A stretch of DNA of 63,768 nucleotides, counting the filler, from Choristocarpus tenellus KU-1152 (Eukaryota; Protista; Phaeophyceae): assembly GCA_964200185.2 (NCBI GenBank). It is 11 parts of 11 records of this genome, joined end to end, with 100 filler letters (N's around TTAATTAATTAA, not from the genome) between each part and the next. Parts side by side here need not be neighbours in the genome. Positions count along the whole stretch, not along the records: positions 1 to 5,919 come from CAXNAD020009415.1; 10 more parts are not named here. One strand, written 5' to 3'. Below are positions 1,359 to 5,919 of the stretch, in pieces. Made by a program: the position numbers and the translations under genes. The notes beneath the pieces were generated by a model. That model searched no databases. It was given only the letters and a program-made list of their open reading frames with translations, and had not been told where the DNA came from. How positions within the stretch are numbered: position 1 is the stretch's first letter; each line of letters starts with the position of its first letter.

Positions 1359-4300
1359 ATGTCCAAAGGGGGATATAAGATGGTTGCCCTGGTGGGTTCT
1401 AGTGGAGGTGGGGCTGCAACAATGGGGTGAGGCCAGGAGTCGTGTTGTGATTTTGCCGAGTTTGATCATATAGTTCGTACTATGTTTTGTCAAAAAGTAC
1501 TTCGCTCTACTCTAGGTTCTGGACAACATATCTATCCTTCCTTCTGATCACCAAGTTATAGCTCAGTGCAAGAGTGAGCTTAGGTGAATAGAAAATTTGT
1601 GCCCCTTCATCTATATATTGCAGGCAATTCGATGCTCTTGCCCTGTTGGGCCTGGTGAGGAGCGAGCTCGATGCTGCTGGGATAAAACTAGCTGCAGTTC
1701 AGTTCGTATCAGCGGCGCTGCCCCTCGATACGGCCTCGGCGGAGATGATGGCATCACTCTGGGAGATGGATGTCAATGGCGACTTCATACGCACTGCCCA
1801 GGGTAAGTCAGTGGGATGGTTGGAAACTGCATGTGTGGAATGTGGACTTCACTGATGAGATATCTTGAGTTTTGACGTGGAAAATATGACAGAAGAATCC
1901 CTCGGGAAAACGTACAGATGTAATTCTTAAAAAACCTACTTTGTGAACGTTTATTGGGACTATGCACTGCATCTTCCCTTTAATTGTATGTTCAAGGTCA
2001 ACGATCCCGTAGAGGTGATTGGCCTCCTTTACGAGTCGTTGCAGTAACGAGAAGCCTGGTGCGCAAAAACAAAGTCTCACGCATTTCATTTCCTTCCAAT
2101 ATGGCTTTCACAATGCTGCTAACTCACTGTTTACCCCGAGCATAATTGGGTGAGAGAGTAACATTTGACCCAAACCATATTTTTGTGGGTTCCAACAATG
2201 ATATCCATCTAGTGATGCTCTTTCCGCCGATTTCATCGGCGTCCTTATAGTCCATGAGTAAATCTCCGGCATTAAAAAAAACAGGTTCTGTTCACAAGCG
2301 GTCATTAGGAATCCTCATTTGTGGTCGTCACTTACGGTCAATCTACAGCAACATGCTCTGCCCCAACCTCAGCTGCGTTGGCACGAGGTGACAAAATGAC
2401 CCTCGCCACGCTTACCCTCGGCAGGCAAGTTGGAGGACGTAAACAAAATTGCCTTACGAAAGGATGAGAAAATAGAAGCACTTCTACGTTCAACTACTGG
2501 GGATGTCTCCCCACTGCCGACACACCCGCTTGATGATTGTGGTGATTCTGTCGAACCCCTCCCGCGACTGGATGGGCTGGTGGCGATCTCTTTTGACGTT
2601 CATGGAGTTAACAGGTGGGTCTAGTGCTGTAAATTTGATTTATAGGCCATTCAGACTATAGCAAAGATCAGACTAGTTGCAGACAATCTAGGATTGTATT
2701 TTTGACTCCCTAGCTTTACGCTCTATGGTTCCAACTCAACCTGTTGTTTATAGCAGTTGAATAAGAGAAAAAAGTATGTAGTTGTGTACCACCACTCCTC
2801 CCTGATGCAAAGAAAAACTGCATATGTCTGTATATGCCCCTACCTATGATTTTGGACGAATTAGGAGAAGGGGTCTCAGGCACGCAAGTGGTTAAATTAT
2901 TTGCGTATAGAGTCACCTTATTCCATCCACATTTTTGTGATACCGTTTTTAACCATACTAACTTCCCATCCTTTCACGCTTTTCCTGTGACAAAGACGTG
3001 CAGTGGAAGCAGCAAGGGACATGGGCTTACCTGTGGTAGGTACGGGAGGAAGCTCCCTTGGTGAAGCCATAGCAATGGGATGCAATGTGGTCGGCTCAAG
3101 CGGGGGCTCAGTGGCCACAACCAACAAGTCAAAGGTGAACTGTGTAGGGAGAAGGGGGAAGGGGGAGAGGCAGACAGCACCAATTTCAGTTTGGAGATAT
3201 TATTGATGTGTGGTGGGTCAGGAAGGGGAGGAAGGGGGAATGGTTGTTGCAAGGAGTGTTGGGTATTCATATCTGTTGACCTTGTAGGGGTGGTACCTGG
3301 CTGGTAGGTTTTTGGATAGATTTCGTGTTTTTGTGCCATATCTCACAGTTTGTGATGTGTTGGATGTCTGGAATGCAGCAAAAATTGATGCATTGCAAGG
3401 TGCCGTTAGTGTTTGGGGTAAGTTCAGTCATCCTTGAACTCATTTTCTTGGAGCAGGCACAGCAACCCTCAAGAAAATATGCTGACGCTTTTTTTCTTCC
3501 ATGCCTTGATTGTGCACCTCCACTATTAATTTTAGGTATTTACAAAATATTAAGTAATAACAAACCCTTTTTACTGTTTTCAGCGTTGGAATCTCCCACC
3601 GCAGACGCATACATGTAAGTCCTGAACAGTATACCAATAAGAGCAGTTGCTTTGTAAGAAATAAAATTTATTGAAGAGGCATGCAAAGAGTCACACCGGG
3701 AAGACTCAAGGCGCCATTGGCCTTACATGTACAACTTTATGTCATTGAGGAAGGTTCGTTCTTGCAGAATGAGATTCAATTTAAATATTGTAGTCATATG
3801 GTAGTGGTGAACCACCTGAAAGCAACTGTACCCACCTGAAAAAAGGAAAATAATAGTGGAGGGTATGTGTCCTGTGGTTGCTCCTTCACTAGGTGACAGA
3901 GGTGCTCCCCATGGTGAGTATGAGTATTATATCCCAGTTGGTGATTAGAGGGCTATGACTGATTCCAATATTACCCAGCGATTAAATGAAAAACCCTCTT
4001 GGAAATTGCACCGTAAGAAAAAATAAATAAATATATATGTATGTTCCTTTTCCACATGGCCCTGAAGAAAAATCTGAAGAGTGATCCAAAATTTGTCACG
4101 ATGCTGCACTTGACTCTGCACTTTGAGCAACTGGAAAACAACAATAAAAAATCTAGTGTTCCTGTAGGTCGAGAAATAGTTTTTTTTGAAAATTACTGGT
4201 TTTGAGATTTATTTATTTTTTAGTTGAGGTGTCGTGGTCCCGATTTCTGATCACACTTCTGAGTTGTTGAGATCCAGACGAACATTGAACACCAAGGCTT

Positions 4301-5201
4301 GCTTGCAAATGCTCTGTGGCGCTCTGTAGTAGTACAATGAGTTGGTGAAATTTGTTGGACTGATCGATCCCTCATTGTGCTGTTTGGCATGTTTAGCCCC
4401 TCCGAATATTTCATTACGTTGACGTAATAGAGTATATATAATGAACCCTGGAGTATTTGAGGCGTTGGCTGTTGCAATATTTTTAACATCACGTCAAGAT
4501 GCTAATGAGGAGAGTTGACAAAAAAAAAAAGCGTTTGTGCCCACAGCCTTTACCTGCACATGTTTTGTGTTTGAAACAAGTCACATCTGTACTGTTACTT
4601 GAAGTTCAACAATAGCTTCATAACACTTCTCGAAGTAGGAAATCTGAAGCATGACTCCAGAGTAATCCCCCCACCCCCCTTTTCCAAGAACATGACAAAC
4701 CCTCCCTCTTGAACTTTCGTGGGAAAAATAAAAAATAAAAGGCTGTTTCGTACGCCACCGGCCTCTGCGGCTACTGGGGCCTTGCCTACTGCCCAGGAAC
4801 GGCCCTCACAGGTGTCCTTCTTGCTCCCACATCTTTCTTTGGGGCGTGCCTGCCAGCTTTTCTCACTGTCATGGTGACCACCAGGGTTGCGGCTCTACTG
4901 TCTTCATTGGCCATAGCAGCTTCAACAGCCCTGCAGGGTCAACCAACTGCAGGCTCCAGTGGTTTAGTACAGGGACGTGGAGATGACTGGGAGGTGGACT
5001 CTTGGTGGGGGACACTAGTAGGATTGACAGTTAAGGGGCTTCTCTTTGTGCTGGATGGCATGGTGGAGGGGCTTGGGGAGGAGGAGGGGCTGGCAGATGG
5101 AGAGTGGTGGGGGAAGAGACTGACTGAGGTGATGCCAGTGGTGATGGGGGCGGTGTCAGCACGGCAAATGAGTGCGCTTGGTGATATGGCTGCAGTGGCG
5201 G
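1359..5201 (+). CDS. Intron-containing gene (3'-incomplete) encoding a homolog of bacterial 'PTS sugar transporter'/PTS EIIC-like membrane protein; exons 1359-1426, 1624-1802, 2425-2614, 2996-3134, 4742-5201
   Basis: All four introns are GT-AG with matching phases (2,1,2,0) and the joined frame is open: MSKGGYKMVALVGSSGGGAATMGQFDALALLGLVRSELDAAGIKLAAVQFVSAALPLDTA...QGKLEDVNKIALRKDEKI...LDGLVAISFDVHGVNRRAVEAARDMGLPVVGTGGSSLGEAIAMGCNVVGSSGGSVATTNKSKAVSYATGLCGYWGLAY...GACLPAFLTV...VMPVVMGAVSARQMSALGDMAAVAG. An in-frame TGA at 1317-1319 precedes the ATG. Motif order matches my recollection of Firmicute proteins annotated 'PTS sugar transporter' (no search run). The gene structure is more certain than the functional call. 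Confidence 0.75.
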
Positions 5202-5919
5202 GTGAGTTGAGTAGAGGATGTGCTTTGGAACGGTCAGTTGTGGAGCATGTATGATATAATCATTAGACGGGAATTGATGGTGGGGGAGGATGGGGAGGTG
5301 GGACTGTGGATGAATGAGAAGATCGGGAGTTGATTGCAGTGACTGTGTGCAGGGCAAGGGCCGCACGTGTACATACATGCATACATAAATATAGACAAAT
5401 ACATAGCCCTTTCTTTTTTGTATAGTACATAGTTACATTGTGCTTAATGCTTCTTGCAGGTGTAGAATATTGTTCTCTCTTGTGCATACTCTGATTGTTG
5501 CTTCTGAGGAGCATTCATTCTGGTGCGCGTGCGTCAATATATAGATAATCCTCCTGCTCTACACCAACACATACAAAGTGTGAATTAGAAAGTTGTACCA
5601 GATGAAGACGGAGGGTAAGAAAGAAAGAAAAAAAGGTAGCGGGTATGGGTTCATTGGCCCGTCAACTGTGTGACAATCATTTCTTTTTTTGCTTCAGGGG
5701 CCTTCTCTCCCTCGGCCTGGGTTCCCCCCCCCCCGTCTATCTTGGGTACAATGAATCTGTGGGGGCTGGGGTAAGTGTTAGGGGTGACGAGCATGTTGTC
5801 AGAACTACTTGTGGTGGTCACTGAAGCAGGGAGACTACTGCTTCTTTCGAATGGGGGGGGGTGGGGGGGGATGTTGGGCTTGGAGTAAGCCAGGTATATT
5901 TATGCAAGTGTTTGTTTGT

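Follow-up and report, generated by a model that had tools for sequence, protein, structure and literature searches.

The brown alga Choristocarpus tenellus carries a spliced gene for a protein that joins a soluble alpha/beta N-terminal domain (N-domain) to a C-terminal domain (C-domain) predicted to have the glucose-superfamily EIIC elevator membrane fold of the PEP:sugar phosphotransferase system (PTS). In the reading to which we give slightly better than even chances, this protein is an elevator carrier that transports a small polyhydroxy solute independently of the PTS. It would then be a naturally occurring EIIC that functions with no EIIB, of interest for how PTS permeases compare with plain carriers, and a candidate small-carbohydrate transporter for algae, a group in which carriers of sugars and polyols are poorly known. 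The PTS was stated to be absent from eukaryotes in 2005 (PMC1188273) and again in 2026 (PMC13106763). This appears to hold for the relay; the EIIC membrane fold nonetheless appears to be present in eukaryotes, with carriers among brown algae, chrysophytes, diatoms (an Atlas cluster), a haptophyte, a chlorarachniophyte, a diplonemid and a choanoflagellate. In the literature that we searched, with subscription papers mostly outside its scope, we found no description of the family in eukaryotes, and neither PTS nor EIIC is mentioned in the preprint on brown-algal genomes or in 43 of its supplements; the orthogroup may stand unremarked in automatic annotations or HGT catalogues.

Gene model and splicing

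The window that we analyzed is a stretch of 63,768 nucleotides in 11 joined parts from the C. tenellus assembly (164 Mb), and the gene begins in a part that is a complete 5919-nt contig. A preliminary description of this DNA had proposed five exons joined through GT-AG introns into about 345 codons. The exons (1359-1426, 1624-1802, 2425-2614, 2996-3134 and 4742-5201, all on the + strand) have open frames with GT-AG sites at their borders and fit together in phase (phases 2, 1, 2, 0 and 1, respectively); together they span 1036 nt, i.e., 345 codons plus one nucleotide, and a stop codon stands in frame at 1317, 5' of the ATG. Joints 1426|1624, 1802|2425 and 2614|2996 were seen exactly in a contig of sequencing run X3 at a depth of 314, and joint 3134|4742 was seen exactly in contigs of the same run at a depth of 72, which places all four introns where they had been proposed. 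The library type of run X3 is unrecorded and the run is not on record as RNA, but we read it as a transcriptome because its contigs cover the exons, omit the introns and join exactly. One of them extends beyond the donor at 5201 and off the 5919-nt contig, so that 5202-5919 is the start of intron 5 and the gene runs on past the contig end. These results demonstrate the structure and splicing of the gene.

Exon 1 holds the start codon, the first beta-strand and the GSSGG loop of the N-domain, and ends at an intron positioned as in Ectocarpus. From the spliced contig and the alignment, exon 2 encodes an N-domain helix, the VQF strand and an invariant Asp (LD), and exon 3 an invariant Asn, a loop insertion of brown algae and the DGL..S.D strand. 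Exon 4, with the GTGG and SGGS..TT loops, is the most conserved by database matches and alignment. Searched exon by exon against databases, the window yielded for exon 4 24 matches at E≤0.001 among 1.84 billion representatives, and 27 of 46 residues of this exon are identical in the bacterial protein P0013. Single exons matched nothing in Pfam or NCBIfam, and exon 4 or the eukaryote alignment matched nothing by plasmid tblastn, PDB phmmer, Atlas features or pattern scans of genome contigs; we attribute these null searches to limits of sensitivity because relatives were found by other searches.

In exon 5 the N-domain ends and the EIIC-like membrane helices begin; this exon also contains an insertion of 55 codons at 4938-5102. 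Exon 4 also recovered an identical C. tenellus protein of 307 aa (NCBI CAM9702862.1). In its model, 4938-5102 is spliced out, the 5201 donor is read through and the protein ends early. The spliced contig rules this model out: it keeps 4795-5203 without a gap and continues past 5201, and exon 5 as first proposed is thus the better model. Intron 4 (3135-4741; 1607 nt by the spliced contig) has a purine-rich acceptor that lies two codons later than in Ectocarpus, and the canonical acceptor lacks a pyrimidine tract (window 4700-4877). Spliced contigs also revealed an alternative acceptor AG at 4795-4796. Its joint, 4796|4797, has a depth of 50 (versus 72 for 3134|4742) and gives a frameshifted isoform (4795-4877) with a stop at 4875; by contig depth, a rough guide only, this acceptor accounts for ~40% of intron-4 joints.

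The 3' exons were recovered with the Ectocarpus C-terminal half and the family profile as queries. Exon 7 lies on contig C19350 and exons 8-10 on contig C1612, two contigs that share 41 nt next to a poly-G run. Exons 7-10 are in phase, and the last closes with a short tail and a stop, which rules out the C-terminal kinase or EIIB that had been suggested as a possible fusion. Exon 6 is 66 nt by homology and was seen only as a 30-letter loose end; neither a protein search nor the three contigs examined contained it. The whole gene comprises 10 exons and ~631 aa, and is single copy by the same two queries, which found no second copy in the assembly. Eight of its nine introns lie at Ectocarpus positions (two of the eight depend on the inferred exon 6), the exception being intron 4. 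The protein shows neither a signal peptide nor a plastid presequence. Ectocarpales orthologues (P0029, P0032 and P0046, from Ectocarpus and Cladosiphon) carry an N-terminal Tudor/MBT-like extension with a weak Pfam match that is absent in Choristocarpus and is either a real fusion or a shared gene-model error.

As the preliminary description had argued from the introns, bacterial contamination is excluded, since the gene is spliced and shares introns with Ectocarpus. More broadly, the idea that the gene is a contaminant, a pseudogene or a chance chain of exons could draw on the frequent frameshifting joint and the fragmented assembly, but it is refuted by the spliced contigs, the intron positions held in common with Ectocarpus, a frame that stays open to the stop, and the clustering of the protein with those of brown algae and Phaeothamnion in the tree; we assign it a negligible probability.

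A neighboring gene, outside the main finding, lies head to head on the - strand at 297-1116 (exons 1116-991, 866-689 and 381-297), as seen from reading frames and CT..AC joints in the same spliced contig. The two start codons are 242 bp apart, and a single continuous contig spans both genes. The product of the neighbor has no Pfam match, but its signal peptide, the ASAFAP-like motif after it and a single hydrophobic helix suggest a small plastid membrane protein. Short repeated elements at 1-45 and ~4015-4045 of the window attract hundreds of contigs in the read layout.

The EIIC-like C-domain and the N-domain

The C-terminal EIIC-like domain proposed in the preliminary description was borne out by structure and profile comparisons. 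Using a model of the full-length Phaeothamnion orthologue (P0009; pLDDT 79), we matched PtsG IIC at E 4e-6 with Foldseek and at Z 18.8 with VIA (323 aligned residues, rmsd 4.3). The top four VIA rows were all EIICs (Z 15.9-18.8; MalT 17.2, ChbC 15.9), and the next rows stood at Z 10. An alignment of the family profile with a BglF EIIC (E 2.4e-6) also pairs GxYH with GLHW; in it, G[TD]FVE coincides with GITEP or lies one residue away, and the invariant Glu is one residue off the GITEP Glu. The sugar ligands common to PtsG, MalT and ChbC are His and Glu (PMC11393339). A His and a Glu are invariant in 185 full-length sequences of the family (120 bacterial and 65 eukaryote-type, the latter including near-duplicates), and the alga's sugar-site His (GxYH) is present in exon 9. 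Two further acidic positions are kept in the 185 sequences, one a strictly invariant Asp and the other Glu or Asp.

The family is thus like the GFL-superfamily EIICs of the PTS (E. coli PtsG IIC, 8QSR; B. cereus MalT and ChbC; IIBC of the sucrose/beta-glucoside type, e.g., BglF) in its predicted membrane fold (Z 16-19), in the His at the GLHW position, perhaps in the Glu beside the GITEP position, and in having a soluble domain N-terminal to IIC. It is unlike them in its low identity (~14%), its lack of EIIB and phospho-Cys, its extra conserved acidic residues and its occurrence in eukaryotes. The suggested comparison with Pfam PTS_EIIC (PF02378) gave a weak match in 2 of 29 members and in no eukaryotic one; neither PF02378 nor TIGR01995/6 produced an above-cut-off family match, with weak matches in some bacterial members and TIGR scores far below the cut-off. 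This weak Pfam match and the offset of the Glu count against the carrier reading. In the Atlas, a stand-alone 185-aa cluster resembles the N-domain and, in Bacillota, a 405-aa cluster resembles the C-domain; both may be split genes or fragments.

The N-domain fold, modeled from the database protein P0001 (pLDDT 88), is a single alpha/beta lobe of ~180 aa. Its best matches were binding-protein, LacI and flavodoxin-like folds, all tied at Z 9-10, and 4 of 29 members gave a weak Pfam Peripla_BP_4 match (best E 6e-6), located near the DG(L/I) strand. The N-domain is in these respects like class I periplasmic sugar-binding proteins and LacI effector domains, with scores no higher than for other Rossmann-like folds, but it has one lobe without the two-lobe hinge cleft, an added beta-hairpin and Gly-rich loops, and it is predicted to be cytosolic. 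The likeness to sugar-binding and effector lobes would suit a sensor or transceptor, i.e., a protein whose EIIC-like domain binds the solute but passes little of it across, the signal being relayed by the cytosolic N-domain, as would the single copy and the Tudor/MBT-like module of the Ectocarpales. However, the matched folds belong to a widespread alpha/beta type, the complete transport domain is conserved, and the bacterial genes adjoin enzymes and their own DeoR/GntR regulators, the layout of an uptake operon. We consider a sensor unlikely.

Three invariant Gly/Ser/Thr loops sit at strand ends of the N-domain, and an Asp, an Asn and a Ser are also invariant. The loops suggest a pocket for a small ligand or phosphate. 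A reading of GSSGGG as a Walker A motif, from a match to ABCB1, was rejected as a low-complexity match, and likenesses of the Gly loops to FtsZ, PFK and GT-B were not accepted because fold scores were weak. EIIB was absent from the structure-match lists of the N-domain, profile comparison with both EIIB types gave no match, and no Cys, His or Lys is conserved in this domain across the 185 sequences.

The invariant loops and residues, the retained His/Glu site of the C-domain and the location of the N-domain in the EIIB position raise the possibility of a self-contained group translocator, in which the N-domain would accept phosphoryl from some donor, such as ATP or PEP, hand it on to the solute and so replace EI-HPr-EIIA-EIIB; a bacterial partner weakly like phosphate-binding TIM barrels, from operons in which no kinase recurs, points the same way. 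Against this, the N-domain has no structural match to a kinase or EIIB, lacks a conserved Lys, Cys or His, and looks like a single lobe, and we judge such a translocator improbable. Also doubtful, to a like degree, is the wider proposal that, in this EIIC-fold family of bacteria and no fewer than five eukaryotic lineages, the fused Gly-rich N-domain takes the place of the PTS relay and either phosphorylates the imported solute or actively gates it. If true in its strongest form, replacement of the relay by the N-domain would mean group translocation in eukaryotes.

For the PTS-independent carrier that we favor, we infer transport, substrate class, gating, ion coupling and membrane location as follows. 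The ancestor would be a bacterial family that joined a glucose-superfamily EIIC membrane domain to a non-EIIB alpha/beta domain. With its His/Glu site, the EIIC-like domain would bind the solute (a sugar acid, a sugar or a polyol); it would then move this solute unphosphorylated by an elevator motion, as a facilitator or a cation symporter, with possible cation coupling via the extra acidic residues. The cytosolic N-domain, at the place of EIIB in IIBC permeases, would use its Gly/Ser/Thr loops to bind a small ligand, and would gate release. Phospho-IIB accelerates canonical EIIC 100- to 1000-fold (PMC13543919), and an EIIC that does not phosphorylate could therefore be slow.

PTS partners and bacterial gene neighborhoods

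The motif series that had been proposed as colinear with bacterial proteins named 'PTS sugar transporter' is present, in order, in our alignments. The algal protein and this bacterial family are colinear over their full length and share the two-domain layout and the invariant motif set (Atlas TM 0.89 over 509 residues); the algal gene differs in its spliceosomal introns, loop insertions and eukaryote-type signatures, and in that the TIM-barrel partner described below was not found in the alga.

The preliminary description had proposed that a domesticated protein acts without EI, HPr, EIIA and EIIB. Searches of the algal genome, a fragmented and intron-rich assembly, found neither EI-N (PF05524), HPr (PF00381) nor either EIIB family, with positive controls. 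Unlike in a PTS enzyme II complex, an EIIB with a phosphorylated Cys is neither fused nor adjacent, and EI/HPr was not found in the host. For EI, HPr and EIIB the proposal was supported, but uncoupling from the PTS seems to hold for the bacterial members already: no EIIA or EIIB neighbor recurs across 28 bacterial loci and, while EI and HPr are present in 15 of 17 bacterial carrier genomes, both are absent in two, which are of uncertain assembly completeness. The 'PTS' label is probably an automatic, fold-derived name rather than the trace of a lost partnership, and we flag the bacterial family as probably misnamed.

Another reading is that bacteria use the protein as a true PTS permease, with a promiscuous EIIA/EIIB acting in trans, and that only eukaryotes repurposed it; this would agree with the database names, with one Saccharopolyspora copy ~3.4 kb from a complete fructose PTS operon, and with the 15 genomes that have EI and HPr, a count that also weighs against the carrier reading. 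We hold this reading to be quite improbable: EIIA/EIIB recur in none of the 28 loci, EI and HPr are missing from two carriers, and bacteria and eukaryotes alike have kept the N-domain, a point in favor of a single mechanism common to both.

Inspection of the operon context, proposed earlier, revealed a TIM-barrel gene, regulators and sugar-acid enzymes nearby, but no recurring PTS partner. The closest bacterial partner is the TIM-barrel gene, directly downstream in 8 of 28 loci plus one more, with a DeoR or GntR regulator; such neighbor counts are inflated by related genomes, and many loci are orphans. Its family has a solved structure, PDB 4ML9, titled only 'uncharacterized protein', and is weakly similar to phosphate-binding TIM barrels. 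The partner protein (L009:9612-10445 and relatives) is highly conserved, has many invariant His residues and matches 4ML9. The substrate of this enzyme would probably name that of the transporter. One query did not find the partner in the alga, and the eukaryotic substrate may therefore differ. No kinase recurs in the TIM-barrel operons. Both genomes without EI and HPr carry a TIM-barrel operon, and in them a HisB-like dehydratase follows the transporter, TIM-barrel and GntR genes on the same strand (L024:4086-4823, L025:5443-6093).

Other recurring neighbors encode 2-hydroxyacid dehydrogenases (a common enzyme type), glucarate dehydratase with GntP, and a DapA-family aldolase; there are also a four-carbon sugar-acid kinase family gene and one glycerate kinase, the latter separated from the transporter gene by a terminator-like hairpin. 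Judged by gene content, the bacterial neighbors lean toward sugar-acid metabolism, and nothing points specifically to mannitol or other polyols; a role in algal polyol or sugar transport had been put forward as a hypothesis.

Distribution and phylogeny

A survey of stramenopiles had been proposed; homologues occur in other ochrophytes, and also in four lineages beyond them. Named eukaryotic homologues come from Ectocarpus, Cladosiphon, Phaeothamnion, Dinobryon and Chromulina, and further ones from the haptophyte Diacronema, the chlorarachniophyte Amorphochlora, the diplonemid Namystynia and the choanoflagellate Helgoeca; one Atlas cluster of homologues is led by diatoms. The bacterial P0013, which lies in an operon, recovered 398 proteins, of which those that carry a name are called 'PTS sugar transporter'; the best 120 of the 398 are 39-47% identical to it. 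The bacterial family occurs in Bacillota, Actinomycetota and Spirochaetota, and Atlas clusters are led by Pseudomonadota. Carriers are sparse: with the query genome counted in each, they number 3 of 401 Bacillota, 13 of 301 genomes in the class of Sporomusa, 12 of 201 in the family of the Bacillus strain and 1 of 401 in the class of Actinomyces.

In a C-domain tree (quick search, rooted with two beta-glucoside/sucrose-type EIICs), 20 eukaryote-type sequences formed one clade (SH-aLRT 98), with the bacterial P0013 as its sister (94). Twelve of the 20 are environmental, and two of their contigs that were checked look eukaryotic or uninformative. Bacterial monophyly is compatible with the C-domain data (p-AU 0.43). 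In a full-length tree (also a quick search), Amorphochlora adjoined the bacteria, while brown algae and Phaeothamnion grouped together (96); neither tree included proteobacterial members.

The algal gene belongs to a patchy, eukaryote-wide clade across at least five major lineages and is probably an old acquisition. The horizontal origin proposed for the gene therefore fits, but as an old bacterial transfer and not as a novelty of brown algae. The sequence data would be explained by one old transfer, vertical descent in ochrophytes, and either spread between eukaryotes or many losses; we place its direction from bacteria to eukaryotes because EIIC is otherwise prokaryotic. Eukaryote-type sequences carry the signatures GSSGGG, SGGSVATT and GDFVE where bacterial ones have GSSGGN, SGTTGTT and GTFVE, and among the 120 aligned bacterial sequences P0013 is the only one with the eukaryote-type signatures.
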